Shown here one piece after another: positions 1 through 26,575 of a stretch of DNA of 64,000 nucleotides (within the stretch, counting starts at the first letter, position 1; every line of letters begins with the position of its first letter). The notes below the pieces were generated by a model that was not told the origin of the DNA, ran no database searches, and saw nothing but the letters and a program-made list of their open reading frames with translations. The DNA lies in NCBI GenBank assembly GCA_965637545.1, contig OZ281496.1, forward strand, positions 28,210,001-28,274,000. Direction: 5' to 3'. Made by a program: the position numbers and the translations under genes. This stretch comes from Phallusia mammillata. Lineage: Eukaryota.

Positions 1-309
1 AAAACTAATAAAACCTAATTTTTGTTTCTGGATTTTTGCCCTGTTCGGTCAATTTTACCCACGTAATAGGTTGGTTTGGTTTAATAAAAATATAGTAAAA
101 ATGCGCTACAGCAAATATTTTAAAATTTTCAGTCTTTTTGATTTCGTATATTTACCGCAATTGCATCATACTAATTAAGTCAAAAAATAGGTCTTATTTT
201 CGCATTTTTTATTATTTTGGGGTAGTTTGGAACTTTGTGCCTCTGGAAAACTAATTAAGGTTTTCAAGGCATTTCAGGCCACGTCCAGTTAATCAGCCCA
301 TTCAGCTCT

Positions 310-425
310 GTGATTGGACGGTTGAAGAGCGCCAATGCCACGTTTCAGGAGCAAGCGTTCTGATTGGTCGAAAGAAAAAGAAAAAAGGGAATCGTCACAC
401 CTTGAACGCGTGCGGCCGATCAGTC
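310..425 (+). promoter_or_regulatory. Pol II promoter of unit 1: three CCAAT boxes plus Inr
   Basis: ATTGG 313-317, CCAAT 332-336, ATTGG 363-367 and Inr-like TCAGTC 420-425, followed by a pyrimidine run and exon 1. Repeated at the head of every unit. Confidence 0.7.
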
Positions 426-541
426 TTTCTTTAGCAACTCGTGTTGAAGGTGGTTGTGTTGACGGGAGTCTGCTAGAAGATTGAAAAGATGCAGGTAACT
501 TGTAAATTTGCTTGTTTACTTGTTACCTATAATTCTACTTG

Positions 542-605
542 TTCGGTGTCTATGATGGTAGTAAACTTTGGTGCACACTGGTTTACTCCTGCACAGATAC
601 CGGAA
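542..605 (+). ncRNA. Intronic hairpin A (candidate pre-miRNA); copies at 2083, 3631, 5178, 8349 and 9911; damaged copy ~6921
   Basis: TTCGGTGTCT pairs with AGATACCGGAA, and AGTAAAC with GTTTACT. The loop contains GTGCAC. The 3' arm GGTTTACTYCTGCACAGATACCGGAA is conserved while the 5' arm varies. Confidence 0.55.
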
Positions 606-804
606 TCAAACTTACATAGTTGGTTAGGGCTTGCAGAAAATTTTTAAGAGCAAAGTTGTGTTGGATCATTTTGTTTCAGATTTAAGTAAGAAGAACAATA
701 TGATTTGGGAAGACATTGTCTGTGAAGAGGAATGATGATTTACGGAAACAGGCGAGTAAATGTGTTTGTAAATGTTATGAATATAATGTCAAAGTTTGTA
801 AGTC

Positions 805-854
805 CAGCATGGGCGGATAGTTTAAACGTGCACTTATTCTGTCTTCGCATGTCG
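805..854 (+). ncRNA. Intronic hairpin B in a GC-AG intron; copies at 2351, 3899, 5446, 7135, 8614 and 10180
   Basis: CAGCATG pairs with CATGT(C/T)G, and GGCGGATAG with TTATTCTGTC. ACGTGCACTTATTCTGTCTTC is present in all 7 units and, inverted, at 18105-18135. Confidence 0.55.
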
Positions 855-1110
855 AGATGCTAGATTGTTTTTAATAAACTAGTTAATATATCGCCTTAAA
901 TACGTGGTACTGCTTCTGCTTTGTTTTGCAGAAAAGGAACACTGATGTCGATTTGAGTTGCAACCTAACTGCGTAAAGGACAAAGAACAGATGCCTAAAG
1001 CTCCAAAAGGTATGTTATGTTGAATACGCTTTCAAATAGGCCTGCTTGTGCAAATTATGTAACATAATAATATGTAGGGCTTTATTTATAATCATTTCTA
1101 CCATATTGTA

Positions 1111-1183
1111 GCGAATATCTAACCCGGTGTTTATGCATGTTGTACTTCAGTTTTTTGCATGTCATGTGTTTTCGGCTATTCGT
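1111..1183 (+). ncRNA. Intronic hairpin C; copies at 2658, 4206, 5753, 7436, 8922 and 10333; truncated copy at 11115
   Basis: CGAATAGC/GCTATTCG closing stem (CGAATATC in units 1-4), upper ATGCATG/CATGTCAT stem, loop starting TTGYAC or TGGCAC. Confidence 0.5.
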
Positions 1184-1568
1184 TCCTCGCAATCGGTGGA
1201 AGTGAGAGTTTATTTTTTTGCCGCTAAAATTAAATTAATATCAAATACATTAATAGTTCTGTTGAATTATCGCATAAGATTTTGGTCGTAATGTTGACTC
1301 ATCCTGTCGTAGAATGTTGACATATGCTTTAGCACATAATAATGTAGCTTTAATTTTCCATAAGTTTCTGCCTCCTTGTTTTATTTCCTGCAGCATACGT
1401 AAATGCGATGCGACCGTATTCCATGACGAGGAGCTAACGTAAAGGAACATGGCCTTTGAATTTGAGGTAACTAATCTAGCCTTACTGTTGTTGTTGTTTT
1501 TTATTAAATTAAAGTCATAAAATATATGTAGCATACAGCCTGTTACATACCACAGCAAAACACTTTAC

Positions 1569-1635
1569 GTATAGTCCTATATGGGTAAATGAACCAACAA
1601 GTCCCGTGATTGTTCGTTTATACCGTTTCTATGAC
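1569..1635 (+). ncRNA. Intronic hairpin E; copies at 3114, 4662, 6209, 7887 and 9374; diverged copy ~10831
   Basis: GGTAAATGAAC pairs with GTTCGTTTATACC, and GTATAG with CTATGAC. Conserved position in intron 4. Confidence 0.4.
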
Positions 1636-1874
1636 ATTGTACATGTAATCTTTGATTTTTTGCCGATGGGGAATAAATGAATGCTACACTTGCGCTACTT
1701 CATTCTTGTTCGACGGCCTCGGTGAAGGTTGCTGGTGTATTTGGACTTCGTGGATTTCTAAGAAGTCTGACGGATGTTTCAACTTCCGAAGAAGAAGTAC
1801 ATACAAATATCAGGTACTCCTGTTTTGCACATTGTTTTTGTGATGCAGAAGTAAACTATTTTTTGCAGTTATGT

Positions 1875-1962
1875 AATTGGACGGTTGAAGAGCGCCAATG
1901 TGACGTTTCACGAGCAAGCGTTCTGATTGGTCGAACGCAAAAAGAAAACAAGGGGTCATTCT
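1875..1962 (+). promoter_or_regulatory. Unit 2 promoter, short allele (also units 3, 4 and 6)
   Basis: ATTGG-GCCAATGTGACGT-CTGATTGG cassette, then TCATTC at 1956-1961. About 30 bp between the proximal CCAAT box and the Inr are missing relative to unit 1. Confidence 0.6.
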
Positions 1963-4900
1963 TTCTTGAGCAGCTCGTGGTGAAGGTGGTTGTGTTGACG
2001 GGAGTCTGCTGGAAGATGGAAAAGATGCAGGTAGTTTACTTGTACATTTTCTTGTTTTACTTGTTACCTATAATTCTACTTGTTCTGTGTCTATGATAGT
2101 AGTAAACTTTGGTGCACACTGGTTTACTTCTGCACAGATACCGGAATATAGCTTACTAGTTGGTTAAGGCTTGCATAAGTTTTCAAGAACAAAGTTAAAG
2201 TTCTGTTGGATCATTTTGTTTCAGATTTAAGTAAGAAGAACAATATGATTTGGGAAGACATTGTCTGTCAAGAGGAATGATGATTTACGGAAAACAGGCG
2301 AGTAAATGTGTTTGTAAATGTTATGAATATAATGTCAAAGTTTGTAAGTCCAGCATGGGCGGATAGTTTGAACGTGCACTTATTCTGTCTTCGCATGTCG
2401 AGATGCTAGATTGTTTTTAATAAACTAGTTAATATATCGCCTTAAATACGTGGTACTGCTTCTGCTTTGTTTTGCACAAAAGGAACACTGATGTCGATTT
2501 GAGTTGCAACCTAACTGCGTAAAGGACAAAGAACAGATGGCCTAAAGCTCCAAAAGGTATGTTATGTTGAATACGCTTTCAAATAGGCCTGCTTGTGCAA
2601 ATTATGTAACATAACAATATGTAGGGCTTTATTTATAATCATTTCTACCATATTGTAGCGAATATCTAACCCGGTGTTTATGTATGTTGTACTTCAGTTT
2701 TTTGCATGTCATGTGTTTTCGGCTATTCGTTCCTCGCAATCGGTGGAAGTGAGAGTTTAATTTTTCGCCGCTAAAATTATATTAATATCAAATACATTAA
2801 TAGTTCTGTTGAATTATCGCATAAGATTTTGGTCTTAATGTGGACTTATCCTGTCGTAGAATGTTGACATATGCTTTAGCACATAATAATGTAGCTTTAA
2901 TTTTCCATAAGTTTCTGCCTCCTTGTTTTATTTCCCGCAGCATACGTAAATGCGATGCGACCGTATTCCATGACGAGGAGCTAACGTAAAGGAACATGGC
3001 CTTCCAATTTGAGGTAACTAATCTAGCCCTACTGTTTTTGTTTTTTTATTAAATCAAAGTCATAAAATTTATGTAGCATACAGCCTGTTACATACCACAG
3101 CAAAACACTTTACGTATAGTCCTATATGGGCAAATGAATCCACAAGTCCCGTGATTGTTTCTTTATACCGTTTCTATGACATTGTACATGTAATCTTTGA
3201 TTTTTTTTTGCAGGTAAAGGAAAGATGAATGCTACACTTGCGCTACTTCATTCTTGCTCGACATCCTGGGTGAAGGTTGGTGGTGTATTTTGACTTCGTG
3301 GATTTCTAAGAAGTCTTACGGATGCTTCAACTTCCGGAGAAGAAGTACATACAGACACCAGGTACTCCTGTTTTGTAAATTGTTTTTGTGATGCAGAAGT
3401 AAACTATTTTTTGCAGTTATGTAATTGGACGGTTGAAGAGCGCCAATGTGACGTTTCACGAGCAAGCGTTCTGATTGGTCGAACGCAAAAAGAAAAAAAG
3501 GGGTCATTTTTTCTTGAGCAACTCGTGTTGAAGGTGGTTGTGTTGATGGGAGTCTGCTAGAAGATGGAAAGGATGCAGGTTAATTACTTGTAAATGTGCT
3601 TTTTTTACTTGTTACATCTAAACGTACTTGTTCGGTGTCTATGTCAGTATTAAACCTGGATGCACAGTGGTTTACTCCTGCACAGATACCGGAATATAGC
3701 TTACTAGTTGGTTAAGGCTTGCATAAGTTTTCAAGAACAAAGTTAAAGTTCTGTTGGATCATTTTGTTTCAGATTTAAGTAAGAAGAACAATATGATTTG
3801 GGAAGACATTGTCTGTCAAGAGGAATGATGATTTACGGAAAACAGGCGAGTAAATGTGTTTGTAAATGTTATGAATATAATGTCAAAGTTTGTAAGTCCA
3901 GCATGGGCGGATAGTTTAAACGTGCACTTATTCTGTCTTCGCATGTCGAGATGCTAGATTGTTTTTAATAAACTAGTTAATATATCGCCTTAAATACGTG
4001 GTACTGCTTCCGCTTTGTTTTGCAGAAAAGGAACACTGATGTCGATTTGAGTTGCAACCTAACTGCGTAAAGGACAAAGAACAGATGGCCTAAAGCTCCA
4101 AAAGGTATGTTATGTTGAATACGCTTTCAAATAGGCCTGCTTGTGCAAATTATGTAACATAACAATATGTAGGGCTTTATTTATAATCATTTCTACCATA
4201 TTGTAGCGAATATCTAACCCGGTGTTTATGTATGTTGTACTTCAGTTTTTTGCATGTCATGTGTTTTCGGCTATTCGTTCCTCGCAATCGGTGGAAGTGA
4301 GAGTTTAATTTTTCGCCGCTAAAATTATATTAATATCAAATACATTAATAGTTCTGTTGAATTATCGCATAAGATTTTGGTCTTAATGTGGACTTATCCT
4401 GTCGTAGAATGTTGACATATGCTTTAGCACATAATAATGTAGCTTTAATTTTCCATAAGTTTCTGCCTCCTTGTTTTATTTCCCGCAGCATACGTAAATG
4501 CGATGCGACCGTATTCCATGACGAGGAGCTAACGTAAAGGAACATGGCCTTCCAATTTGAGGTAACTAATCTAGCCTTACTGTTTTTGTTTTTTTATTAA
4601 ATCAAAGTCATAAAATTTATGTAGCATACAGCCTGTTACATACCACAGCAAAACACTTTACGTATAGTCCTATATGGGCAAATGAATCCACAAGTCCCGT
4701 GATTGTTTGTTTATACCGTTTCTATGACATTGTACATGTAATCTTTGATTTTTTTTGCAGGTAAAGGAAAGATGAATGCTACACTTGCGCTACTTCATTC
4801 TTGCTCGACATCCTGGGTGAAGGTTGGTGGTGTATTTTGACTTCGTGGATTTCTAAGAAGTCTTACGGATGCTTCAACTTCCGGAGAAGAAGTACATACA

Positions 4901-6707
4901 GACACCAGGTACTCCTGTTTTGTAAATTGTTTTTGTGATGCAGAAGTAAACTATTTTTTGCAGTTATGTAATTGGACGGTTGAAGAGCGCCAATGTGACG
5001 TTTCACGAGCAAGCGTTCTGATTGGTCGAACGCAAAAAGAAAAAAAGGGGTCATTTTTTCTTGAGCAACTCGTGTTGAAGGTGGTTGTGTTGATGGGAGT
5101 CTGCTAGAAGATGGAAAGGATGCAGGTTAATTACTTGTAAATGTGCTTTTTTTACTTGTTACATCTAAACGTACTTGTTCGGTGTCTATGTCAGTATTAA
5201 ACCTGGATGCACAGTGGTTTACTCCTGCACAGATACCGGAATATAGCTTACTAGTTGGTTAAGGCTTGCATAAGTTTTCAAGAACAAAGTTAAAGTTCTG
5301 TTGGATCATTTTGTTTCAGATTTAAGTAAGAAGAACAATATGATTTGGGAAGACATTGTCTGTCAAGAGGAATGATGATTTACGGAAAACAGGCGAGTAA
5401 ATGTGTTTGTAAATGTTATGAATATAATGTCAAAGTTTGTAAGTCCAGCATGGGCGGATAGTTTAAACGTGCACTTATTCTGTCTTCGCATGTCGAGATG
5501 CTAGATTGTTTTTAATAAACTAGTTAATATATCGCCTTAAATACGTGGTACTGCTTCCGCTTTGTTTTGCAGAAAAGGAACACTGATGTCGATTTGAGTT
5601 GCAACCTAACTGCGTAAAGGACAAAGAACAGATGGCCTAAAGCTCCAAAAGGTATGTTATGTTGAATACGCTTTCAAATAGGCCTGCTTGTGCAAATTAT
5701 GTAACATAACAATATGTAGGGCTTTATTTATAATCATTTCTACCATATTGTAGCGAATATCTAACCCGGTGTTTATGTATGTTGTACTTCAGTTTTTTGC
5801 ATGTCATGTGTTTTCGGCTATTCGTTCCTCGCAATCGGTGGAAGTGAGAGTTTAATTTTTCGCCGCTAAAATTATATTAATATCAAATACATTAATAGTT
5901 CTGTTGAATTATCGCATAAGATTTTGGTCTTAATGTGGACTTATCCTGTCGTAGAATGTTGACATATGCTTTAGCACATAATAATGTAGCTTTAATTTTC
6001 CATAAGTTTCTGCCTCCTTGTTTTATTTCCCGCAGCATACGTAAATGCGATGCGACCGTATTCCATGACGAGGAGCTAACGTAAAGGAACATGGCCTTCC
6101 AATTTGAGGTAACTAATCTAGCCTTACTGTTTTTGTTTTTTTATTAAATCAAAGTCATAAAATTTATGTAGCATACAGCCTGTTACATACCACAGCAAAA
6201 CACTTTACGTATAGTCCTATATGGGCAAATGAATCCACAAGTCCCGTGATTGTTTGTTTATACCGTTTCTATGACATTGTACATGCAATCTTAGATTTTT
6301 TGCAGATAAGGAATAAATGAATGCTACACTTGCGCTACTTCATTCTTGTTCGACGGCCTGGGTGAAGGTTGGTGTTGTATTTGGACTTTGTGAATTTCTA
6401 AGAAGTTTGACGGATGTTTCAACCTTCAGACTAGAAGTACTTACAGATTTTAGGTACTACTGTTTGTTAAATTGTGGGTTTTTTGTGGTGCAGAAGTAAA
6501 CTAGGGTACACACAGTAGTAAATTTCTTATTGATTTCGTAAGAGTTATTTTACGCAAAAGCATCATACTAATTAGGTCATAAATTACGTCTCATTTTCGC
6601 ATTTTATTTTGGGTCAGTTCAGCGCTTTTATTTGTGCCTCTAGAAAATTAATTAAGGTTTTCGTAGCATTTCAGGCCACGTCCGGTTAATTGCCCCCAAT
6701 CAGCTAC

Positions 6708-6825
6708 GTGATTGGACGATTAAAGAGCGCCATTGTGACGTTTCAGGAGCAAGCGTTCTGATTGGTTGAAAGAAAAAAGAAAAAAAGGAATTGTCACACC
6801 TTGGACGCGTGCGGTCGGTCATTCT
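6708..6825 (+). promoter_or_regulatory. Unit 5 promoter, long allele, with duplicated upstream flank
   Basis: GTGATTGGACG...GCCATTGTGACGT...CTGATTGG...TCATTC (6819-6824). The middle box reads CCATT. 6520-6710 is homologous to 130-310. Confidence 0.6.
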
Positions 6826-9680
6826 TTCTTTAGCAGCTCGTGGTGAAGGTGGCTGTGTGGACGGGAGTCTGCTAGAAGATGGAAAAGTTGCAGGTAATTT
6901 GCTTTTTGTACATTTACTCGTTGTCTTTGTAGGTAGTAAACTTTGGTACTTCTGCATAGTTAACGGAATATAACGTACATCGTTGCTACGGTTTGCATAA
7001 AATTACAAGAACAAAATACTGATGTTCATTTTGTTTCAGGAAAAGACATTTCCACAAGAGGAATGATGATTTACGGAAAACAGGCGAGTTAATATGTTTG
7101 TAAACGTAAACAATCTATGTCCAAACATTTAAGTCCACTTGGGCGGATAGTTTAAACGTGCACTTATTCTGTCTTCCCATGTTGAGATGCTATTTTTGTA
7201 TATTAAACTAGATAGTATATCGCCTTAAATGCCTGGTACTGCCTCCGCTTCGTTTTGCAGAAAAGAAACACGGATGCAGATTTGAGTATAGCAACCTAAC
7301 ACAAACTGCATAAAGGACAAATAACAGATGACCTCTAAAAGGTATGCTGTGCTGAACACGCTTTCAAATAGTGCAAATAGTGTAACATAACAATATATGC
7401 AGGGCTTAAATTGAAACCACTTCTACCATATTGTAACGAATAGCTGGCCTGACTTTTATGCATGTGGCACTTCACTTTTTTGCATGTCATGTGTCTGCGG
7501 CTATTCGTTCCTCGCAATCGGTGGAAGTGAGAGTTCTATTTTTCGCCGCTAAAATTAAATTAATATCAAATACATTAATAGTTCTGTTGAATTATCGCAT
7601 AAGATTTTTGGCGTAATGTGGACTTATCCTGTTTTCGCATGTTGACATATACTTAAGCACATAATAATGTAGCTTTAATTTTCCATAAGTTTCTGCCTCC
7701 TTGTTTTATTTCCCGCAGCATACGTAAATGCGATGCGACCGTATTCCATGACAAGGAGCTAACGTAAAGGAACATGGCCTTCGAATTTGAGGTAACTAAT
7801 CTAGCCTTACTGTTTTTTTTATTAAATCAAAGTCATAAAATATATGTAGCATACAGCCTGTTACATACCGCAGCAAAACACTTTACGTATAGTCCCATAT
7901 GGGCAAATGAATCAACAAGTCCCGTGATTGTTTGTTTATACCGTTTCTATGACATTGTACATGTAATCTTTGATTTTTTGCAGATGAGGAATAAATTAAT
8001 GCTACACTTGCGCTACTTCATTCTTGCTCGACGGCCTGAGTGGAGGTTGGTGGTGTATATGGACTTTGTGAATTTTTGAAAGGTATGACGGATGTTTCAA
8101 CTTTTGTGATGCAGAAATAAACTATTTTTTGCAGTTATGTAATTGGACGGTTGAAGAGCGCCAATGTGGCGTTTCACGAGCAAGCGTTCTGATTGGTCGA
8201 AGGCAAAAAGAAAAAAAGGGGCCATTTTTTCTTGAGCAACTCGTGTTGAAGGTGGTTGTGTTGACGGGAGTCTGCTAGAAGATGGAAAAGATGCAGGTAG
8301 TTTACTTGTACATTTTATTGTTTTACTTGTTACCTATAATTCTACTTGTTCTGTGTCTATGATGGTAGTAAACTTTGGTGCACACTGGTTTACTCCTGCA
8401 CAGATACCGGAATATAACTTACATAGTTGGTTAAGGATTGCATAAAAAAAAACCAAGAGCAAAGTTCTGTTGGATCATATTGTTTCAGATTTAAGTAAGA
8501 AGAACAATATGATTGTGAAAGTCATTGTCTGTGAAGAGGAATGATGATTTACGGAAACAGGCGAGTAAAGGTGTTTGTAAATGTTATCAATCTAATGTTA
8601 AAGTTTGTAAATCCAGCATGGGCGGATAGTTTAAACGTGCACTTATTCTGTCTTCGCATGTTGTGATGCTAGATTGTTTTTAATAAACTAGTTAATATAA
8701 CGCCTTAAATACCTGGTACTGCTTTCACTTTGTTTTTCAGAAAAGAACACTCATGCAGATTTGAGTTGCAACCCAACTGCTTAAAGGACAAAGAACAGAT
8801 TGCTTAAAGCTATAAAAGGTAGGTTATGTTGAATAAGCTTCAAATAGTGCGTGATTGCGCAAATCGTGTAACATAACAATATATGTAGGGCTTCATTTAA
8901 AACCACTTCTACCATATTGTAACGAATAGCTAACCCGGTGTTTATGCATGTGGCACTTTTGTTTTTTTGCATGTCATGTGTTTTCGGCTATTCGTTCCTC
9001 GCAATCGGTAGAAGTGAGAGTTCTATTTTTCGCCGCTAAAATTATATTAATATCAAATACATTAAAAGTTCTGTTGAATTATCGCATAAGATGTTGGTCG
9101 TAATGTGGACTTATCCTGTCTTCGCATGTTGACATATACTTTAGCACATAATAATGTAGCTTTAATTTTCCAAAAGTTTCTGCCTCCTTGTTTTATTTCC
9201 TGCAGCATACGTATGTGGGATCCGATCGTTTTCCGTAACGAGGAGCTAACGTAAAGGAACATGGCCTTCGAATTTGAGGTAACTAATCTAGCCTTACTGT
9301 TTTTTTTATTAAATTAAAGTCACAAAATATATGTAGCATACAGCCTGTTACATATCACAGCAAAACACTTTACGTATAGTCCTATATGGGCAAATGAATC
9401 CACAAGTCCCGTGATTGTTTGTTTATACCGTTTCTATGACATTGTACATGTAATCTTTGATTTTTTTGCAGGTAAAGGAAAGATGAATGCTACACTTGCG
9501 CTACTTCATTCTTGCTCGACGGCCTGAGTGAAGGTTGGTGGTGTATTTTGACTTCGTGGATTTCTAAGAAGTCTGACGGATGTTTCAACTTTCGGACTAG
9601 AAGTACTTACAGATATCAGGTACTCCTGTTTTGTAAGTTGTTTTTGTGATGCAGAAATAAACTATTTTTTGCAGTTCTGT

Positions 9681-9800
9681 AATTGGACGGTTGAAGAGCG
9701 CCAATGTGACGTTTCAGGAGCAAGCGTTCTGATTGGTCGAAAGCAAAAAGAAAAAAAAAGGAATCGTCACACCTTGGACGCGTGCGGCCGGTCATTCTTT
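9681..9800 (+). promoter_or_regulatory. Unit 7 promoter, long allele
   Basis: Same CCAAT triplet, TGACGT and GGTCATTCTTTCT initiator as unit 1. Confidence 0.6.
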
Positions 9801-10510
9801 CTTTGACAACTCGTGGTGAAGGTGGCTGTGTCGACGGGAGTCTGCTAGAAGATGGAAAAGATGCAGGTAGTTTGCTTGTACATTTTCTTGTTTTACTTTA
9901 AATCTACTTGTTCGGTGTCTATGATAGTAGTGAACTTTGGGTGCACACTGGTTTACTTCTGCACAGATACCGGAATATAACTTACATAGCTGGTTAAGGC
10001 TTGCATAAATTTTCAAGAGCGAAGTTCTGTTGGATCATTTTGTTACAGATTTAAGTAAGAAGAACAATATGATTTGGGAAGGCATTGTCTGTCAAGAGGA
10101 ATGATGATTTACGGAAAACAGGCCAGTAAATGTGTTTGTAAATGTTATGTTATCAATCTAATGTTAAAGTTTTTAAGTCCAGCATGGGCGGATAGTTTGA
10201 ACGTGCACTTATTCTGTCTTCGCATGTTGAGCTCTAAAAGGTTTGTTATGTTACATTAGGTATTAAATAGTGCCTAGTGTAACATAACAATATATGTAGG
10301 GCTTTAATTGAAACCACTTCTACCATATTGTAGCGAATAGCTATCCCGGTGTTTATGCATGTGGCACTTCAGTTTTTTGTATGTCATGTGTTTTCGGCTA
10401 TTCGTTCCTCCCAATCGGTGGAAGTGAGAGTTCTATTTTTCGCCGCTAAACTTAACATTAATATTAAATGCATTAACAGTTCTGTTGAATTATCCCATAC
10501 GATTTTGGTT

Positions 10511-10563
10511 TAATATGGGAAGGCAGTGTAACGTGCACTTACCCTGCCTTCGCTTATTGACAT
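10511..10563 (+). ncRNA. Hairpin D, the only intact copy in array 1 (paralog of B)
   Basis: GAAGGCAG-T-GTAA / TTAC-C-CTGCCTTC stem with a CGTGCAC loop. Units 1-6 lack about 17 nt of this 5' arm. Confidence 0.5.
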
Positions 10564-11160
10564 ATTTTAAAACACGATAAAGTAGCTAATTGTTTTCATA
10601 CATTTCTGCCGCTGTTGTTTTATTTCATGCAGATAGGCAGATGCGATGGCATTGTATTCAGGATCGGAAAGGAGCTAAAAAAGGATAATGACTTTCGACA
10701 TTGAGGTAACTAACCTAGCCGTACTGTTTTTTTTTGTGTGTGTTTTTTTCTTTGTCTTTTGTTATAAAACTTAATGCGGTCTTTACTCAATCCCAACGCT
10801 TGTATATCAAAGTAAAACACTTCTACTTAAAGTCACGTACTGTAATTAAACCAATAAGCCCTGCTGTGACTGCTTGATTTTTTACCTTTACATGACAACG
10901 AACACATAATCTTTTCGTTTTTCTGCAGGTGAAGAAACCTATTTGGTCTGTGAATTTCTACGAAGATGTTTTAACTTCAAGACATCAGGTACTACTTTTG
11001 TTATTTTTTTGTGGTGCGGAAGTAAACTAAGGTATACACAGTAGTAAACTTCGTTACTTGTGTCATTTTTTATTTCGGCTTATACTAGATCGCTAACACT
11101 CCTACCATGTTGATGCGAATAGCTATCCCGGTGCTTGAGCATGTTGCACTTTGTTTTTTT

Positions 11161-11201
11161 GGGGTTTTGGGTTTTGGGGTTTTTGGGTTTTTTGGGTTTT
11201 G
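11161..11201 (+). repeat. (G3-4 T4-6)n microsatellite with G-quadruplex potential
   Basis: GGGGTTTTGGGTTTTGGGGTTTTTGGGTTTTTTGGGTTTTG: five G-tracts. Confidence 0.8.
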
Positions 11202-11869: not shown

Positions 11870-14170
11870 ATGTGCGTTTTTTATGTTCTGTGTTGTGCGT
11901 TTTTTAGTGTTGTGTGTTGTGCGTTTTTTAGTGTTGTGTGTTGTGCGTTTCTATGTTGTGGTTTGTGTGTTTTGTTGTGTTTCTATGTTGTGGGTTGTGT
12001 TTTGTTTTTGTGGTTCTATGTTGGGCGTTGGGCGTTTTTTTTTGTTTCTATGTTGTGGTTTGTGCGTTTTTTGTGTTTCTATGTTGTGCGTTGTGGGTTT
12101 TTTGTGCTTGTGTTTTTTGCGTTTCTATGTTGTGCATTTTTGTGTGTGTTTCTATGTTTGCCTTTGTAAGTTTTTTTTGTTTAGTGTTTTTTGCGTTTTT
12201 ATGTGGGTTGTGCGTTTTTAGTGTTTCTATGTTGTGTGTTATGCGTTTTTAGTGTTTCTATGTTGTGTGTTATGCGTTTTTAGTGTTTCTATGTTGTGTG
12301 TTATGCGTTTTTAGTGTTTCTATGTTGTGCGTTTTTTTTGCGTTTCTATGTGGGTTGTGCATTTTTAGTGTATCTATGTTGTGCGTTTTTGCGTTTCTAT
12401 GTTGTGGGTTGTGCGTTTTTTGCGTTTCCATGTTGCGCGTTTTTGTGTGTGTTTCTATGTTGTGCGATGTGCGTTTTTTTGCTTTTGCGTTTTTTGCGTT
12501 TCCATGTTGTTCTGGGTTGTGCATTTTTTGCGTTTCTATGTTGTTTTGGTTGTGCGTTTCTGTGTTGTTCCTTGTGCGTTTTTTTTGCTTTTGTTTTTTG
12601 CGTTTCTATGTTGTTGTGGGTTGTGCGTTTTTTGCGTTTTTATGTTGTGCGTTTTTGTGTGTGTTCTATGTTGTGCGATGTGCGTTTTTTTGCTTTTTTT
12701 GCGTTTCTATGTTGTTGTGGGTTGTGCATTTTTTGCGTTTCTTATGTTGTTTTGGTTGTGCGTTTTGTTGCGATTCTATGTTGTGGTTTGTGCGTTTTTT
12801 TGCGTTTCTATGTTGTGCGTTTTTGTGTGTGTCTATGTTGTGCAATGTGCGTATTTTTGCTTTTGCGTTTTTTGCGTTTCTATGTTGTGTTTTTTTGCGT
12901 TTCTATGTTGTTCGTTGTGCGTTTTTTTGCTTGTGTTTTTTTGCGTTTCTATGTTGTTGTGGGTTGTGCATTTTTTGCGTTTCTATGTTGTGTGGGTTGT
13001 GCGTTTTTTGCGTTTCTATGTTGTTCGTTGTGCGTTTTTTTGCGATTCTATGTTGTTGTGGGTTGTGCATTTTTTGCGTTTCTATGTTGTGTGGGTTGTG
13101 CGTGTTTTGCGTTTCTATGTTGTGTGTTTTTATGTGTGTTCGATGTTGTGCGATGTGCGTTTTTTTGCTTTTGCGTTTTTTGCGTTTCCATGTTGTTCTG
13201 GGTTGTGCATTTTTTGCGTTTCTATGTTGTTTTGGTTGTGCGTTTCTGTGTTGTTCCTTGTGCGTTTTTTTTTGCTTTTGTTTTTTGCGTTTCTATGTTG
13301 TTGTGGGTTGTGCGTTTTTTGCGTTTCTATGTTGTGCGTTTTTGTGTGTGTTCTATGTTGTGCGATGTGCGTTTTTTTGCTTTTTTTGCGTTTCTATGTT
13401 GTTGTGGGTTGTGCATTTTTTGCGTTTCTTATGTTGTTTTGGTTGTGCGTTTTGTTGCGATTCTATGTTGTGGTTTGTGCGTTTTTTTGCGTTTCTATGT
13501 TGTGCGTTTTTTTGTGTGTCTATGTTGTGCAATGTGCGTATTTTTGCTTTTGCGTTTCTATGTTGTGTTTTTTTGCGTTTCTATGTTGTTCGTTGTGCGT
13601 TTTTTTGCTTGTGTTTTTTGCGTTTCTATGTTGTTGTGGGTTGTGCGTTTTTTGCGTTTCTATGTTGTTCGTTGTGCGTTTTTTTGCTTGTGTTTTTTGC
13701 GTTTCTATGTTGTTGTGGGTTGTGCATTTTTTGCGTTTCTATGTTGTGTGGGTTGTGCGTGTTTTGCGTTTCTATGATGTGTGGTTTTATGTGTGTTCTA
13801 TGTTGTGCGATGTGCGTTTTTTTGCTTTTGCGTTTTTTTGCGTTTCTATGTTGTGTGGGTTGTGGGTTTTTTGCGTTTCTATGTTGTTCGTTGTGCGTTT
13901 TTTTGCTTCTGTTTTTTTGCGTTTCTATGTTGTTTTGCTTTTGCGTTTTTTGGGTTCTGTGTTGTGTGGGTTGTGCGTTTTGTTGCGTTCTATGTTGTGG
14001 TTTGTGCGTTTTTTGCGTTTCCATGTTGTGTGGGTTGTGTGTTTTTTGCTTTTCTATGTTGTGTGTGTTGTGCGTTTTTTGCGTTTCTATGTTGTGGTTT
14101 GGCGTTTTTGTGTGTGTTTGTTTTTTTTGCTTTTGCGTTTTTTGCGTTTCTATGTTGTGTGGGTTGTGTC
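11870..14170 (+). repeat. TG-rich minisatellite arm (core GCGTTTCTATGTTGTG) with higher-order repeats
   Basis: Degenerate short units. A ~690-bp block is repeated (for example at 12497 and 13184). Confidence 0.97.
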
Positions 14171-14237
14171 TTTTTCTGTGGTGAAATAAAATCGTTTTGA
14201 TTTTTGTCAGTTTTGTGGGGGGCGTCACAGGAAAAAA

Positions 14238-15525
14238 CCGAATTTTCGCTCTCTTTACAGCCGAATTTTCTCTCTCTCTACAGCCGAATTTTCGCTCTCT
14301 TTACAGCCGAATTTTCGCTCTCTCTCTAGAGCCGAATTTCTCTCTAGAGCCAAATCCGAATTTTCTCCTCTCTCTCTCTACAGCCGAATTTTCGCTTCTC
14401 TTTACAGCCGAATTATCTATTTCTCTACAGCCGAATTTTCTCTCTCTCTACAGCCGAATTTCTTTCTCTCTACAGCCGAATTTTCGCTCTCTCTACAACC
14501 GAATTTTCGCTCTTTTTACAGCCGAATTTTCGCTCTCTCTCTACCGCCGAATTTCTCTCTAGAGCCGACTCCGAATTTTCTACTCTCTCTACAGCCGAAT
14601 TTTCGCTTCTTTTTACAGCCGAATTTTCGCTTCTCTTTAGAGCCGAATTTTCTCTACAGCCGATTTTCGCACTCTCTCTACAGCCGAATTTCCTCTTTCT
14701 CTACAGCCGAATTTTCGCTCTCTCTCTACAGCCGAGAATTTTCGCTTCTCTTTACAGCCGAATTTTCGCTTCTTTTTACAGCCGAATTTTCGCTTCTCTT
14801 TAGAGCCGAATTTTCTCTACAGCCGATCTCTCTCTACAGCCGAATTTTCGCTTCTTTTTGCAGCCGAATTTTCACTTCTCTTTAGAGCCGAATTTTCTCT
14901 ACAGCCGATTTTCGCACTCTCTCTACAGCCGAATTTTCGCACTCTCTCTACAGCCGAATTTTCGCTTCTTTTTACAGCCGAATTTTCGCTTCTCTTTAGA
15001 GCCGAATTTTCTCTACAGCCGAATTTCTTTCTCTCTACAGCCGAATATTTTCGCACTCTCTCTACAGCCGAGAATTTTCGCTTCTCTTTACAGCCGAATT
15101 TTCGCTTCTCTTTAGAGCCGAATTTTCTCTACAGCCGAATTTCTTTCTCTCTACAGCCGAATTTTCTCTCTCTCTACAGCCGAATTTTCGCTCTCTCTCT
15201 GCAGCCGAGAATTTTCGCTTCTCTTTACAGCCGAATTTTCGCTTCTTTTTACAGCCGAATTTTCGCTTCTCTTTAGAGCTGAATTTTCTCTACAGCCGAA
15301 TTTTCGCTTCTTTTTGCAGCCGAATTTTCGCTTCTCCAGCCGAGAATTTTCGCTTCTCTTTACAGCCGAATTTTCGCTCTCTCTCTACAACCGAATTTTC
15401 GCTCTTTTTACAGCCAAATTTTCGCTCTCTCTCTACAGCCGAATTTCTCTCTAGAGCCGAATCCGAATTTTCTCTCTCTCTACAGCCGAATTTTCTCTCT
15501 TTACAGCCGAATTTTCTCAGCCGAA
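14238..15525 (+). repeat. Central ~23-25-bp minisatellite (TACAGCCGAATTTTCGC + CT-rich run)
   Basis: Dozens of tandem copies, with TCTAGAGCCG and CCGAGAATTT variants. Confidence 0.97.
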
Positions 15526-15534
15526 CAAATAGAA

Positions 15535-17625
15535 AACCCAACAACTTTCAACACAAACAACATGGAAAACTGCAAAAAACACAACATAGAAAACGCACAA
15601 CTCTCAACACAGACAACATAGAAAAACGCAACAACTCACAACACAGACAACATAGAAAAACGTACAACTCACAACACAGAAAAATGCACAACTCTCAACA
15701 CAGACAACATAGAAAAATGCTAGATAAACGAACAACACAGGCAACATAGAAAAACGCCCAACTCTCAACACAGACAACATAGAAAAATGCAATACACATA
15801 CCATAGAAAACGCACAACTCTCAACACAAATAACATATAAAAACGCAACAACCCACAACACAGACAACATAGAAAAACACAACATAGAAAAAAACTTCCA
15901 TACACAGGCAACATAGAAAAACGCAAAAAAACACAACATAGAAACGCAAAAACGCACAACATAGATACACTAATAAAAAACGCACAACTCTAGAAAACTG
16001 CAAAAAAACATAGCATAGAAAACCCAACAACTTTCAACACAGACAACATGGAAAACTGCAAAAAACACAACATAGAAAACGCACAACTCTCAACACAGAC
16101 AAACATCACAACTCTAACAACTCACAACACAGACAACATAGAAAAACGTACAACTCACAACACAGAAAAATGCACAACTCTCAACACAGACAAACTCACA
16201 ACTCTCAACACAGACCACATAGAAAAATGCATAACTCACAAAAGCGGAGAACATAGAAAAATACAACATAGATAAACGAACAACACAGGCAACATAGAAA
16301 AACGCCCAACTCTCAACACAGACAACATAGAAAAATGCAATACACATACCATAGAAAACGCACAACTCTCAACACAAATAACATATAAAAACGCAACAAC
16401 CCACAACACAGACAACATAGAAAAACACAACATAGAAAAAAACTTCCATATACAGGCAACATAGAAAAACGCAAAAAACACAACATAGAAACGCAAAAAC
16501 GCACAACATAGATACACTAATAAAAAACGCACAACTCTAGAAAACTGCAAAAAACACAGCATAGAAAACCCAACAACTTTCAACACAGACAACATGGAAA
16601 ACTGCAAAAAACACAACATAGAAAACGCACAACTCTCAACACAGACAAACATCACAACTCTCAACACAGACAACATAGAAAAATGCAATACACATACCAT
16701 AGAAAACGCACAACTCTCAACACAAATAACATATAAAAACACAACCACCCACAACACAGACAACATAGAAAAACACAACATAAAAAAAAAACTTCCATAC
16801 ACAGGCAACATAGAAAAACGCAAAAAACACAACATAGAAACGCAAAAACGCACAACATAGATACACTAATAAAAAACGCACAACTCTAGAAAACTGCAAA
16901 AAACACAGCATAGAAAACCCAACAACTTTCAACACAGACAACATGGAAAACTGCAAAAAACACAACATAGAAAACGCACAACTCTCAACACAGACAAACA
17001 TCACAACTCTAACAACTCACAACACAGACAACATAGAAAAACGCAACAACTCACAACATAGAAAAACGCAACAACTCACAACACAGAAAAATGCACAACT
17101 CTCAACACAGAAAAATGCACAACTCTCAACACAGACCACATAGAAAAATGCATAACTCACAAAAGCGGAGAACATAGAAAAATACAACATAGATAAACGA
17201 ACAACACAGGCAACATAGAAAAACGCCCAACTCTCAACACAGACAACATAGAAAAATGCAATACACATACCATAGAAAACGCACAACTCTCAACACAAAT
17301 AACATATAAAAACGCAACCACCCACAACACAGACAACATAGAAAAACACAACATAAAAAAAAATTCCATATACAGGCAACATAGAAAAACGCAAAAAACA
17401 CAACATAGAAACGCAAAAACGCACAACATAGATACACTAATAAAAAACGCACAACTCTAGAAAACTGCAAAAAACACAGCATAGAAAACCCAACAACTTT
17501 CAACACAAACAACATGGAAAACTGCAAAAAACACAACATAGAAAACGCACAACTCTCAACACAGACAAACATCACAACTCACAACACAGACAACATAGAA
17601 AAACGCAACAACTCACAACACAGAC
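15535..17625 (+). repeat. CA-rich minisatellite arm (core CACAACATAGAAAAACGC), inverted counterpart of the 11870-14170 arm
   Basis: Its reverse complement shares the GCGTTT(TT)CTATGTTGT core. The higher-order anchor AACATGGAAAACTGC occurs at ~15560, 16045, 16591, 16940 and 17511. Confidence 0.97.
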
Positions 17626-18156: not shown

Positions 18157-19827
18157 ACCAAACACTAAATGTAATAAAACAATTAGGATTATATCACAAG
18201 AACTAATGACGGCATTTGCGCCAGACAAAAATTTACGAATTATGACATTTTAAAAATACTTTGTTTCGCAAATTAGCCAAGCAAACACTTTTACTAATGC
18301 TGACCCACTAATAGTTACCCAAAACACATAACACGTAAAAAAGTAAAATGCAACATGCTCAAGCACAGGGTTAATCAGCATGGTAGAAGCGTTTGTTCGC
18401 TGTTTTTTAAACAGCATTTCAAATTTAGTATTAGGCGGATTTAATTTATCTTTACTCTGTGAATCTTAGGCCCTACTTACATTGCTGACTTTCGTATCAG
18501 AGCCGTATCAGGTGGTGTTGTGACTCTAATCTGAAACAACCAACAAAAGTTCAATAGTTATCCCTCAGAGTTAGGCAAAATTAATCTATTTTAACCTTAT
18601 ATGGCACTTAATACACAAGCGGTTGGTTTATATGTTGTTATATTAGCGGCGCGGAATACATTAAACACTTATTAAACACTCACTAAGTACACAAGCGGTA
18701 CGTTATATATGTTTTATAAATAAGTAATGTATATTTTAAGTATTGTACACGTATGCGTTTTATTATATTGTAGTGTTGTGCCTACTGTGTTTGTTTAGTT
18801 AGGTTTTCTCGTTTTATATGCTACATCTGTGTAACGTTTGCATTAATAAATATTACTTACGCTCTTACGTACTATTATATTATTGTTAGTTTATGCAACT
18901 GGAACGCGCTATTTAACTTACATTGCTGCCTTGAAAGTGCTTTCATCCATCTGGGGACGTAGGTTTATATCCGAAATCTGAAAAAACAACAGTTGTTCAG
19001 CGTGTACAAATCAGGCAGCTTATTCAGGACATTATTTGTTTTTAAAAATGTATTGAAACATATTCAATATAATTATTAACCCTCCCATAGACATAGTCCC
19101 TACATACATCACGCATTTTTTTACGGTCAAGTAAAATATAACTCAGAAACTACATGGCAATACAAATAAGGTCACAACAGCATTACTTACATTCAGTATC
19201 CAGTCCTTCAGTACATCGATTCCATATGAAAACTCCTGGGATGTTTACATCAGGAAAGGATTGTTGATCCTACACTAAAAACAACAGGTTCTCAGTTCCG
19301 CGAATAAATGTGTACAATTCAGAGTAGGTTTGTATCAGCTACAAACTAATGGTTGTAAATTATGCATAAATAAATTGTACATACACCCATTATATAAGCA
19401 ACCAAGCCAATAACATACTTACAACTTTGGCGTTATCGCTTCATGGTCTCGGTAACACTTCCCTTCGGCATCCGATATTTTCCTGCAATACCAAAGCAGA
19501 AGCAGTACCACGAATTCACAGACAATTTAAACTGCATTAAAATATGTTTTTGGCAAGTCAACATGTGGAGACGGCATAGTGCACTTTACACAGTCCCCAC
19601 ATGCTGGTCCTATTATATATTATAAACTACACACTATATATGTTCAACCCTTTTAAAATCTACTTGCCTATTATTTTAAGTTCCATGTTGCAAAACCTCG
19701 CATGCCACTTCAGTCGCATAAAAGGACTTTCTTTCCATTGCTTTATTGGATAACCTGAAACAAAATAAACTAGCAGTATAAACAAGTATTTGAAAAGTAA
19801 CCTAGTTATATTAACTCGCAAACAAAA

Positions 19828-19893
19828 TTTCGGTATCTTGCAAAAAGTAAACCAGTGTTCACCCAAGTTTACTTCTACACAGAAACCGAACAA
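19828..19893 (-). ncRNA. Intact hairpin A homolog in array 2 (another at 21801-21864)
   Basis: Minus strand TTGTTCGGTTTCT-GTGTAGAAGTAAAC-loop-GTTTACTTTTTGCA-AGATACCGAAA. Confidence 0.55.
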
Positions 19894-20261
19894 ATAGCAC
19901 CTAATGTTAATGTAATACGTATATTGTGAAATAAAATGTTAAGTGTAGGAGATGTAGTTTGCTACCATGATTACAAGTTACCTTAAACGTAAGAAGGCCT
20001 TGTTCCCCTCAATTCCAGTTTCTTCTCGTCACAGAAACGACCATCGCTTTTCTACCGAAACTGCAAAAAAAAACAGGGACGCAGAAACGTATAGACAATA
20101 AAGTTACGTTATCATGTGCTAAAATATGTCAACATGCGAAGACAGGTATAAGAACTATTGTGTGGTTACGTCACAAACAACGATGACGTCATAAAACTTT
20201 TAACGCTGAACGTCCTTATATTAATCAAAAATTAGCAGCGCACTTCTACCGATGCCGACAA

Positions 20262-20343
20262 ACAAATAGCCTAGTCCTCTTAAAACACACGCCATGCAGA
20301 ATTGTAAGTGCAACATGCTCAAGCACGGGCTATAGCTATTCGT
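20262..20343 (-). ncRNA. Hairpin C homolog in array 2 (another ~18320-18390)
   Basis: Minus strand ACGAATAGC...GTGCTTGAGCATGTTGCAC...GCTATTTGT. The 5' arm matches the 11115 copy. Confidence 0.5.
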
Positions 20344-23285: not shown

Positions 23286-23349
23286 GTTGTCAATCATGCA
23301 GAAATAAATGGTACGTACACCCATTATATAAGCACCCAAGTCACTAACA
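23286..23349 (-). ncRNA. Hairpin F (8 copies, one per module)
   Basis: GTTAGT/ATTGAC, GTGC/GCAT and AATGG/CCATT stems with a GTGTA(T/C)GTA loop. Starts just after the exon-y donor. Confidence 0.4.
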
Positions 23350-23490
23350 AACCTTTCAGCTTTTCCGTTACTGACTTTATGGTCTCCGTAACACTTTCGT
23401 TCCGATTCAGATATTTTCCTGTAAACCGAAGCAGAAGCAATACCACAAATATACAAAAAAATAAACAACATTAAACTCCGTTTGTAGCAA

Positions 23491-23540
23491 GTCAACATGT
23501 GGAGACGGCATAGTGCACTTTACACAGTCCCCACATGCTG
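23491..23540 (-). ncRNA. Hairpin B-prime (8 near-invariant copies), candidate pre-miRNA
   Basis: Minus strand CAGCATGTGGGGAC-TGTGTA-AAGTGCAC-TATGCC-GTCTCCACATGTTG, extended by a TAGTAGG/CTTGCTA basal stem. Lies in a GC-AG intron. Confidence 0.6.
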
Positions 23541-26444
23541 TCCCTACTATATATTATAAACTACACACTACATATGTTCAACTCTTATAAAATCTACTTG
23601 CCTATGTATTTTAAGTTCCGTGTTGCAAGACCTCGCATGCCACCTCAGTCGCATAAAAGGACTTCCTTTCCATTACTTCTTTGGGTAACCTGAAACAAAA
23701 TAAACCCGCTGCAGAAACAATTATTTGAAAAGTAACCTGGTTATATTAACTCGCAAACAATATTTCGGTATCACTGCAAGAAGTAAACCAGTAAACCATC
23801 ATTCTATAAGAAAACTCCTGGGATGTTTACATCAGAAATGGATTGTTGACCCTACACTAAAAAGGTTCTCAGTTCAGCGAATGAATGTGTACAATTCAGA
23901 GTAAGGTTTGTATCTACTATAAACTAATTGTTGTCAATCATGCAGAAATAAATGGTACGTACACCCATTATATAAGCACCCAAGTCACTAACAAACCTTT
24001 CAGCTTTTCCGTTACTGACTTTATGGTCTCCGTAACACTTTCGTTCCGATTCCGATATTTTCCTGTAAACCGAAGCAGAAGCAATACCACAAATATACAA
24101 AAAAATAAACAACATTAAACTCCGTTTTTAACAAGTCAACATGTGGAGACGGCATAGTGCACTTTACACAGTCCCCACATGCTGTCCCTACTATATATTA
24201 TAAACTACACACTATATATGTTCAACCCTTATAAAATCTACTTGCCTATGTATTTTAAGTTCCGTGTTGCAAGACCTCGCATGCCACCTCAGTCGCATAA
24301 AAGGACTTCCTTTCCATTACTTCTTTGGGTAACCTGAAACAAAATAAACCCGCTGCAGAAACAAGTATTTGAAAAGTAACCTAATTACATTAACTCGCAA
24401 ACAAAATTTCGGTATCACTGCAAGAAGTAAACCAGTAAACCATCGATTCCATTAGAAAACTCCTGGGATGTTTACATCAGGAATGCATTGTTGATGATAC
24501 ACTAAAAAGGTTCTCAGTTCAGCGAATGAATGTGCACAATTCAGAGTAAGGTTTGTATCTACTATAAACTAATTGTTGTCAATCATGCAGAAATAAATGG
24601 TACATACACCCATTATATAAGCAACCAAGTCACTAACAAACTTACAACTTTGGCGTTATCGCTTCATGGTCTCGGTAATACTTCCCTTCGGCTTCCGATA
24701 TTTTCCTGCAGTACCAAAGCAGAAGCAGTACCACGAATTCACAGACAATTTAAACTGCATTAAAACATGTTTTTAACAAGTCAACATGTGGAGACGGCAT
24801 AGTGCACTTTACACAGTCCCCACATGCTGGTGCTATTATATATTATAAACTACACACTTATATATGTTCAACCCTTATAAAATCCACTTGCCTATTATTT
24901 TAAGTTCCATGTTGCGAGACCTCGCATGCCACTTCAGTCGCATAAAAGGACTTTCTTTCCATTGCTTATTTGGATAACCTGGAACAAAATAAACTAGCAG
25001 TAGAAACATGTATTTGAAAATAAAAACAAATATATTTACTTACAAACTATAATGCGGTATCACTGCAAGAAGTAAACCAGTAAACCATCGATTCCATAAG
25101 AAAACTCCTGGGATGTTTACATCAGGAATGCATTGTTGATCCTACACTAAAAAGGTTCTCAGTTCAGCGAATGAATGTGCACAATTCAGAGTAAGGTTTG
25201 TATCTACTATAAACTAATTGTTGTCAATTATGCAGAAATAAATGGTACATACACCCATTATATAAGCACCCAAGTCACTAACAAACTTACAACTTTTCCG
25301 TTGTGACTTTATGGTCTCCGTGACACTTTCGTTCCGATTCCGATATTTTCCTGTAAACCCAAAGCAGAAGCAGTACCACGAATTCACAAAAAATTAAACA
25401 ACATCAAATTCCGTTTTCAACAAGTCAACATGTGGAGACGGCATAGTGCACTTTACACAGTCCCCGCATGCTGGTCCCACTATACATAATAAGTTAGACG
25501 CTTATATATGTTCAACTCTTATAGTATGTACTTGCCTATTATTTTAAGCTCCGTGTTGCAAGATCTCGCATGCCACTTCAGTTGCATAAAAGGACTTTCA
25601 TTCCATTACTTCTTTGGATAAACTGAAACAAAATAAACTCGCTGCAGAAACAAGTATTTGAAAGTAACCTAATTACATTAACTTGCAAACAATATTCCGG
25701 TATCACTGCAAGAAGTAAACCAGTAAACCATCGATTCCATAAGAAAACTCCTGGGATGTTTACATCAGGAATGCATTGTTGATCCTACACTAAAAACAAC
25801 AGGTTCTCAGTCCAGCGAATGAATGTGCACAATTCAGAGTAAAGTTTGTATCTACTATAAACTAATTGTTGTTAATTATGCAGAAATAAATGGTACATAC
25901 ACCCATTATATAAGCACCCAAGTCACTAACAAACCTTTGAACTTTTCCGTTATGACTCTATGGTCTCCGTAACACTTTCGTTCCGATTCCGATAATTTCC
26001 TGTAATGCAGAAGCAGTACCACGAATATACAAAAAATAAACAACATTAAACTCCGTTTGTAGCAAGTCAACATGTGGAGACGGCATAGTGCACTTTACAC
26101 AGTCCCCACATGCTGACACTACTATATATTATAAACTACACACTTATTAATGTTCTACTAAGCTACTTGCCTATTATTTTAAGTTCCGTGTTGCGAGACC
26201 TCGCATGGCACTTCAGTCGCATAAAAGGATAACCTGAAACAATAAACTAGCAGTAGAAGCGTGTATTTGAAAATTAACCTAATTATATTTACTCGTAAAC
26301 AGTGTGCATCCAAGTTTACTTCTACACAGACACCAAACAAGTTCGCTTAAAAACGAGATTACCTGCATCTTTTCCATTTGTAAGTCTTCTTTATGGGCAG
26401 ACTCCCGTCCACACAGCCACCTTCAACACGAGCTGTCAAAGAAA

Positions 26445-26575
26445 GAATGATCGACCCCACGAGTCCAAGGTATGACGATTTCCTTTTTTCTTTTTGCTTT
26501 CGACCAATCAGAACGCTTGCTCCTAACACGTCACATAGGCGCTCTTTTAACTGACCAATGACAGGTGTTATTGCA
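26445..26575 (-). promoter_or_regulatory. Array 2 promoter, same cassette as array 1
   Basis: Minus strand reads ATTGG (26555-26559), GAGCGCCTATGTGACGT, GCAAGCGTTCTGATTGGTCGAAAG (CCAAT 26504-26508) and Inr TCATTC (26445-26450). Confidence 0.75.

Follow-up and report, generated by a model that had tools for sequence, protein, structure and literature searches.

A two-block tandem array in Phallusia mammillata as a probable amplification of a complete small non-coding host gene

We analysed a window of 64,000 nucleotides from the ascidian Phallusia mammillata (assembly GCA_965637545.1, contig OZ281496.1, positions 28,210,001 to 28,274,000 of the forward strand), which is free of any N and whose own coordinates are used throughout. 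On its + strand, from 310 to ~11020, lie seven copies (u1 to u7) of a unit of ~1.55 kb, which are 76-98% identical and are referred to here as array 1. With a probability of about 0.7 we regard array 1 as a complete small non-coding host gene that was amplified in tandem to seven copies in two blocks. Each unit would be composed of a TATA-less NF-Y-type CCAAT cassette with an initiator (Inr) or polypyrimidine start, five short exons that lack a reading frame, a hairpin (A) in intron 1, a second hairpin (B) in a GC-AG intron 2 and an end motif that resembles a poly(A) signal. The amplification of whole units had been proposed in an initial annotation of this DNA, and it is borne out by the fact that the cassette, the five exons with their conserved splice sites, the hairpin introns and the poly(A)-signal-like end are all part of the repeat.

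The T-rich acceptor in front of the internal cassettes was created at the duplication junction, and therefore exon 5 of an upstream unit can be joined to the cassette and exon 1 of a downstream unit. The same ~160-190 nt thus combine the roles of promoter-like DNA and internal exon, and the removal of a whole unit as a 'super-intron' becomes possible. In the mechanism that we propose, the exons would be a disposable scaffold and the product that matters would be the intronic hairpin RNA. Amplification of the unit would raise the number of start sites and the payload together.

Organization of the array

The cassette motif ATTGGACGGTTGAAGAGCGCCAATG is found seven times on the + strand, at 313, 1876, 3424, 4971, 6711, 8142 and 9682 (chance expectation 0 for the 25-nt core), and the cassettes follow each other at distances of 1563, 1548, 1547, 1740, 1431 and 1540 nt. 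A full alignment of the units divides the array into two blocks, the first consisting of a flank, u1-u4 and a tail and the second of a flank, u5-u7 and a tail. The upstream flank of block 1 (150..309, + strand) is homologous to that of block 2 (6540-6707); these about 170 bp are carried among the units by u1 and u5 only, and u4 and u7 have the downstream tail in common.

The units u2-u4 are mutually 96-98% identical. Compared with u1-u4, the identity is 94% for u1, 91-92% for u6, 86-87% for u5 and 79-80% for u7, and the least similar pair is u5-u7 with 76%. Each of u1, u5, u6 and u7 is individually distinct, with differences of 6-24% and private indels. The closest relative of a unit changes from segment to segment: intron 1 of u2 is nearer to that of u6/u7, and exon 5 of u4 is unlike exon 5 of u2/u3. 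Because the segments conflict on which units are closest, this mosaic pattern indicates a stepwise growth of the array with exchange among units.

Contigs of four sequencing runs were examined over 4880-10879. Two of the runs are RNA-like (X1 and X2; small, from one study) and two are DNA-like (X3 and X4; these may derive from the assembly's own sample). X3 and X4 hold DNA contigs that are specific to u5, u6 and u7, and in both runs the contigs common to u2-u4 have 3-4x the k-mer depth of unit-specific contigs, a depth which is not to be read as a copy number. Further DNA contigs in X3/X4 join different units in a way that differs from the assembly, at 5525/7079 (7079 back to 5525), 5605/10284 and 7097/10139. 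In one example exon 2 of u5 precedes an intron 2 of u4 type, and in another exon 3 is retained in a unit of u7 type. These recombinant joints suggest structural polymorphism via unequal exchange in the sequenced animals.

Exon structure and splicing

The exon model was built on u4 as reference unit, where all features are on the + strand. Exon 2 (5320..5392) is defined by RNA joints and splice sites and is followed by intron 2 (5393..5572), a GC-AG intron with the structure CAG|GCGAGT ... TTTTGCAG|, which holds hairpin B and is supported by an RNA joint from 5389 to 5570 with 3 ambiguous letters. Exon 3 (5573..5651), again supported by RNA and splice sites, is deleted in u7. For exon 4 (6036..6108) a contig end at 5651 runs into CATACGTAAATGCGAT and a joint leads from 6106 to 6304, and exon 5 (6306..6453) ends with TAG|GTACT. 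When this model was mapped to all units the splice sites were conserved almost everywhere, and the GC donor CAG|GCGAGT of intron 2 is kept in 7/7 units. In u5, exon 2 is shortened and the unit end is deleted.

Every unit had been said to end in a donor CAG|GTACT. This applies exactly to u1, u2, u3, u6 and u7 (1811, 3359, 4906, 9617 and 10986), but not to u4, which has TAG|GTACT, or to u5, where the site is deleted and a private donor AAG|GTATGA is present at 8082|8083. The unit-end motif GTGRTGCRGAARTAAACTA, in which an acceptor-like site precedes a poly(A)-signal-like hexamer AGTAAA/AATAAA, is found in 7/7 units. At the five internal junctions the end motif is directly followed by TTTTTTGCAG and the next cassette; the unit end and junction at 1840..1868 (+ strand), for instance, read GTGATGCAG|AAGTAAACTA and then TTTTTTGCAG|. 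The acceptor predicted in front of the cassettes of u2-u4, u6 and u7 was indeed located, as TTTTTTGCAG, at 1859, 3407, 4954, 8125 and 9665, and a comparison with u1, u5 and the tails of u4/u7 places this T-rich acceptor at the duplication breakpoint.

Contigs of X1 and X2 are confined to the predicted exons, with zero depth in intron bins, and have joints at the predicted sites between exons 1 and 2, 2 and 3 (across the GC-AG intron 5393-5572), 3 and 4, and 4 and 5 (6109-6305 removed, GT..AG). The exon-only coverage and the splice joints are the reason why X1 and X2 are taken as RNA. The units are thus shown to be transcribed in the + direction, with splicing as predicted.

Splicing was also seen between units, as had been proposed. 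An inter-unit GT..AG intron (8083..9674, + strand) leads from the exon-5 donor of u5 to the acceptor TTTTTTGCAG before the cassette of u7 and spans all of u6. Its joint, 8082|9675, occurs in both RNA-like runs; it was placed at 8080 to 9673 and the cut lies +2 from there, and the X2 contig has 0 mismatches on either side. A 344-nt contig of X1 runs from exon 5 through a long-form cassette with exon 1 (192 nt) into exon 2, and a further X2 contig, with its start at 8171 inside the u6 cassette and ahead of the third box, extends into exon 2. Either all of u6 is spliced out as a 1592-nt intron, or the RNA stems from an animal without u6 and the intron has ~52 nt. The joint in RNA means that Pol II crosses unit boundaries, that the junction acceptor is used and that the cassette is also an internal exon. 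Since the cassettes of u6 and u7 are transcribed through, upstream starts account for at least a share of the output. Transcripts spliced across successive units, as in host arrays of the C19MC/SNORD116 type, are therefore present in two runs (8082|9675). Among the joints listed none uses a CAG|GTACT donor.

A protein-coding reading was ruled out. Among the open reading frames (ORFs) starting with ATG in the joined exons none is longer than 45 aa and none is common to different units; the two ORFs of 45 aa, in exon 5 of u1 and of u4, match no Pfam family, and the exons are too short and stop-rich for an informative exon-by-exon protein search. In 27-64 kb of the window no ORF of at least 130 aa is present. 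The units thus give rise to a spliced Pol II transcript without a conserved reading frame, as is typical of a non-coding small-RNA host.

The promoter-like cassette

From 5' to 3' the cassette consists of ATTGG, 19 nt further on CCAAT, 31 nt further on CTGATTGG, an A-run and an Inr-like start, and it contains no TATA box. CTGATTGG is an extended NF-Y-type site with the opposite-strand form CCAATCAG. Together with its flank this third box, GAGCAAGCGTTCTGATTGGTCGAA (24 nt), is found in 7/7 units and in a single minus-strand copy at 26499-26522. All seven units have an Inr-like TCAGTCT, TCATTCT, TCATTTT or CCATTTT within a pyrimidine tract, after which come ~70 nt of exon 1, ending with GATGCAG|GT. 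Between A-run and Inr, u1, u5, u7 and the second array of the window (array 2, see below) keep a segment of 30 nt that is deleted in u2, u3, u4 and u6, so that in the short form the boxes are 30 nt nearer to the putative start.

On the + strand, cassette and exon 1 of u1 occupy 313..494 (boxes at 313, 332 and 363; Inr A at 422; donor GATGCAG|GT). The short forms of u2 (1876..2030), u3 (3424..3578) and u4 (4971..5125) were assigned by alignment and motif. The long form of u5 (6711..6893) has the middle box CCATT and an additional CCAATCAG at 6696. For u6 (8135..8296, short form) an RNA contig covers 8171-8296 and goes on into exon 2, and in u7 (9675..9866, long form) the region is the 192-nt internal exon of the read-through RNA. 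Of the CCAAT-triplet/Inr cassette claimed for each unit, the conserved cassette is present in 7/7 units; the complete triplet does not hold for u5, where the middle box has decayed to CCATT. CCAAT density alone was dropped as a statistical argument, as one chance triplet (3 pentamers within 55 bp) is found in the other 37 kb. The extended site CTGATTGG is present in 8/8 cassettes versus once in the remaining 37 kb, and the statistical weight of the cassette is therefore based on conservation and on this extended NF-Y-type site. In Ciona the preferred start dinucleotides are CA and TA, and the highly expressed ribosomal-protein genes have a TATA-less polypyrimidine initiator (PMC4691747). Judged by its letters, the cassette would fit either Ciona start type, CA or polypyrimidine.

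We lean towards the view that the cassettes are the promoters of this family and that at least some of the internal ones fire. Indirect support comes from array 2, where the only other cassette of the window stands at the 5' end and the identity to array 1 climbs from ~30% to 83-91% precisely at box 1. Homology begins at box 1 in four different settings, namely the flank of u1/u5, the junction type, array 2 and copies outside the window. In the extra-window copies, which were found in the DNA runs, the boundary to unlike upstream sequence is again box 1, at position 9682, and the upstream parts are absent from the window. In u7, the oldest unit, cassette and exon 1 keep 89-92% identity and exon 5 is down to ~44%. 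At the level of sequence, each tandem unit has its own promoter-like region, as in a promoter-dense array. A ranking of read-through against internal initiation by contig depth was dropped, since depth cannot rank the parts of a gene. That every cassette fires appears rather doubtful to us. If true, array 1 and the outside copies would form an independent tunicate Pol II promoter array of miR-430-like density, whose promoters are built from the TATA-less NF-Y/Inr type and double as internal exons of upstream-started transcripts, and whole units would be removable as hairpin-bearing super-introns.

Copies of the Inr/exon-1 start (6818-6856) and of the cassette (9682) with unrelated flanks that do not occur in the window were found in the DNA runs, and the start copies of 6818-6856 with a foreign flank also in an RNA-like run. 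It follows that the cassette family has members at other places in the genome or in other haplotypes. No match to the cassette or to exon 1 came from two scans of metagenome contigs.

Intronic hairpins and the intron-3 element

Hairpin A is located in intron 1 (542..605 in u1, + strand; the equivalent in u3 is 3631-3694) and has a 23-bp consensus stem with -26.2 kcal/mol and z = -4.9. Across the units the values range from -24 to -26 kcal/mol and from z = -4.1 to -4.9, and the u5 copy has a 12-nt deletion in the loop. Hairpin B in the GC-AG intron 2 (3897..3955 in u3, + strand) is weak, with many G-U pairs (-15.7 kcal/mol, z = -1.1), and strand-specific, with -15.7 kcal/mol on the + strand vs -5.5 kcal/mol on the - strand. 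By folding, A and B thus represent the conserved structured RNA that the introns of a small-RNA host contain. The statement that the seeds are not those of miR-430 is correct, as AAGTGC is absent from the sense strand of 301-11060; AAGUGC is present antisense to the loop of hairpin B, but that strand does not fold.

An extra B-type hairpin is found in intron 3 of u7 (10503-10562, -21.5 kcal/mol, z = -4.0), and its 5' arm holds GGCAGUGU, the seed string of miR-34/449. A search of 1-11200 against Rfam with permissive E-values returned only a chance-level mir-449 match in this hairpin (20 bits, E = 2.1). The window contains no tRNA genes.

Intron 3 contains a further element of ~135 nt, which is nearly invariant in all 7 units (4247..4385 in u3, + strand; e.g., also 1152-1290, 7477-7615 and 10374-10515). 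It is nearly unchanged even in the diverged u5 and u7, while the adjoining intron decays. The element includes an octamer-like TTTTGCAT, GGAAGTG (ETS-like) and an ATTAAT...ATTAAT palindrome. An RNA structure was rejected, as no covariation and no stable consensus fold were detected. The element could act as an intronic enhancer or represent an unrecognised RNA.

Alternative interpretations

Several points weigh against the reading of array 1 as an amplified complete host gene with active internal cassettes. The RNA label of X1 and X2 is a guess, and the contigs carry no information on RNA 5' ends or transcription starts. The verified inter-unit joint uses the donor private to u5 and not CAG|GTACT. 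The part of the u6 and u7 cassettes that precedes the Inr is covered by RNA, so these cassettes are at least partly transcribed through and possibly passengers. As u2-u4 are so similar (96-98%), their cassettes look intact whether used or not, and gene conversion could be the cause of the conserved 5' half of u7. Splice sites have decayed in individual units, with the exon-5 acceptor of u1 changed from AG to CG, the exon-3 acceptor of u2 from AG to AC and exon 3 of u7 lost. Finally, Rfam at gathering score recognised no family in the whole window.

Transcription might have its only starts at the cassettes that lead the two blocks (u1, u5), or at points still farther upstream, and yield a polycistronic precursor in which the internal cassettes are carried as exon or intron, a design like that of C19MC or SNORD116-type hosts and of array 2 and not like miR-430. 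We consider this possible, yet not the likelier case. It would agree with the splicing of the u6 and u7 cassettes, including the part upstream of the Inr, to an upstream exon 5 and with the strong T-rich acceptor that precedes internal cassettes only; the u5 cassette itself is covered by no RNA contig, and the recent units are too young to reveal disuse. However, the old u7 cassette has kept its identity of 89-92% despite decayed 3' exons, the poly(A)-signal-like end in every unit fits self-contained units, and read-through is compatible with internal initiation, both being shown by miR-430-type arrays. It is improbable that array 1 is a drifting segmental duplication, a by-product of unequal crossing-over beside a satellite whose transcription and splicing are inherited noise. 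The array adjoins a 6-kb minisatellite, its units are mosaic, several of them lack splice sites, an exon or the hairpin A loop, and recombinant junctions occur in the DNA runs. On the other hand, the cassette, the hairpin introns and the 135-nt intron-3 element are kept while their neighbours decay, the diverged convergent array 2 retains the same cassette and hairpin types, and spliced RNA is found in two samples.

Still less probable is an operon-like organization, in which the TTTTTTGCAG acceptors are trans-splice sites for a spliced leader (SL; leader-to-TTMTGTAATTGG) and cut read-through RNA into capped unit-length RNAs. It is established that tunicate genes are often SL trans-spliced and some are in operons (discussed in PMC4691747), and the acceptor lies exactly at the unit boundaries. 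However, the sole observed use of the acceptor is cis-splicing to an upstream exon 5, and among the loose ends listed at 8135 or 9675, where coverage is thin, none is leader-like. That the extra units are an artefact, mis-assembled from a shorter repeat, is very hard to believe. The near-identical u2-u4 are a repeat type prone to assembler error, and the sample behind the DNA runs with this stretch may be the one that was assembled. Nevertheless, the private differences of u1, u5, u6 and u7 (6-24%) and the unit-specific DNA contigs for u5, u6 and u7 speak against such an artefact, as does the 3-4x k-mer depth of the contigs shared by u2-u4 in X3 and X4 (again depth, not copy number), and an RNA contig spans the u5-to-u7 junction with zero mismatches.

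Comparison with known arrays

The best-known case of dense tandem Pol II promoters is the fish miR-430 locus, in which the promoters seed a transcription body when the genome is activated. The tandem promoter-plus-hairpin design that had been cited for this locus is correct: the zebrafish locus contains >300 promoters at a density of one in ~1.8 kb, and their starts are sharp and of the TATA type (bioRxiv 10.1101/2021.08.09.455629). Like miR-430 (and Xenopus miR-427), array 1 is a lineage-specific amplification of tandem units each with a promoter-like region and hairpins, and its spacing of ~1.55 kb per unit is similar to the ~1.8 kb in zebrafish. In contrast, it has seven units instead of >300 and a TATA-less CCAAT/Inr cassette instead of a sharp TATA-box promoter. 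Its hairpins, known from sequence folding, lie in the introns of a spliced multi-exon host, one per intron, and as the sense strand has no AAGUGC seed, array 1 falls outside the miR-430 seed family. By analogy with miR-430 a role in the early embryo could be imagined, but we regard it as unlikely. Single-cell libraries from 2- to 64-cell Phallusia embryos are published (PMC7237864).

Array 1 resembles C19MC and the SNORD116/115 and SNORD113/114 hosts in having a non-coding spliced host with one structured small RNA per intron, in its tandem duplication and in long read-through transcripts spliced across units, seen here as an RNA joint. In C19MC/SNORD116-type arrays only internal exon-intron modules are repeated, and there is one promoter. 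In array 1, however, the repeat includes the cassette and the poly(A)-signal-like end, which sets it apart from a single-promoter array. Species-specific hairpin clusters of Ciona (mir-2200, 2201, 2203 and related) also arose by recent tandem duplication; they contain about 25 hairpins in ~4 kb, almost without spacers, and are read as one precursor (PMC2884542). Array 1 shares with them that it is a species-specific ascidian hairpin family from recent tandem duplication, whereas its 1.55-kb units each have a cassette and about two hairpins, which lie in separate introns. The exonised duplicated promoter-like cassette sets array 1 apart from all compared systems.

An independent, small and tractable example from an ascidian would permit promoter density to be tested as a selected trait, and this group lends itself to such work, since electroporation makes it possible to test cassettes one at a time. 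Array 1 is also a clean case in which a duplication junction creates a splice acceptor and a promoter-like cassette becomes an exon. In addition, the recurrent GC-AG intron around a hairpin bears on the coordination of splicing with hairpin processing.

Array 2 and surrounding sequence

Array 2 (19200-26560, minus strand) is convergent with array 1 across a satellite. Like array 1 it has a homologous cassette with exon 1, an A-type hairpin in the first intron and B-type hairpins; unlike array 1 it has a single cassette, which is followed by 644-bp internal modules. This cassette with exon 1 (26370..26560, minus strand) is the only other one in the window and forms the 5' end of the array. Relative to array 1 it shows an identity of ~30% before box 1 and of 83-88% from there up to the A-run; the 30-nt segment is 79-86% identical, the Inr with exon 1 82-91% and the sequence downstream 32-44%. 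This cassette has no acceptor in front, its middle CCAAT now reads CCTAT through decay, and an insertion makes exon 1 longer. In a repeat search, no long inverted repeat was seen to link the two arrays, which are too diverged for this; the cassette and short hairpin pieces are the only matches.

At the satellite-side ends of the two arrays, 11090-11155 and 18340-18400 (minus strand), the same fragment of intron 3 (CTACCAT..GCTTGAGCATGTTGCA) is present, and the symmetry of the locus therefore reaches the inner ends of the arrays. A short (TTTTGGGG)n run, which has the unit of a ciliate-type telomere repeat, lies at 11156-11201, after the last partial unit of array 1 and before the minisatellite. 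The core of the minisatellite itself (11870-17625) changes from T/G-rich in its left part to A/C-rich in its right part, the units of ~31-34 nt being reverse complements, and a separate 24-nt repeat, (CCGAATTTTCTCTCTCTCTACAG)n, is located in its middle at 14238-15518.

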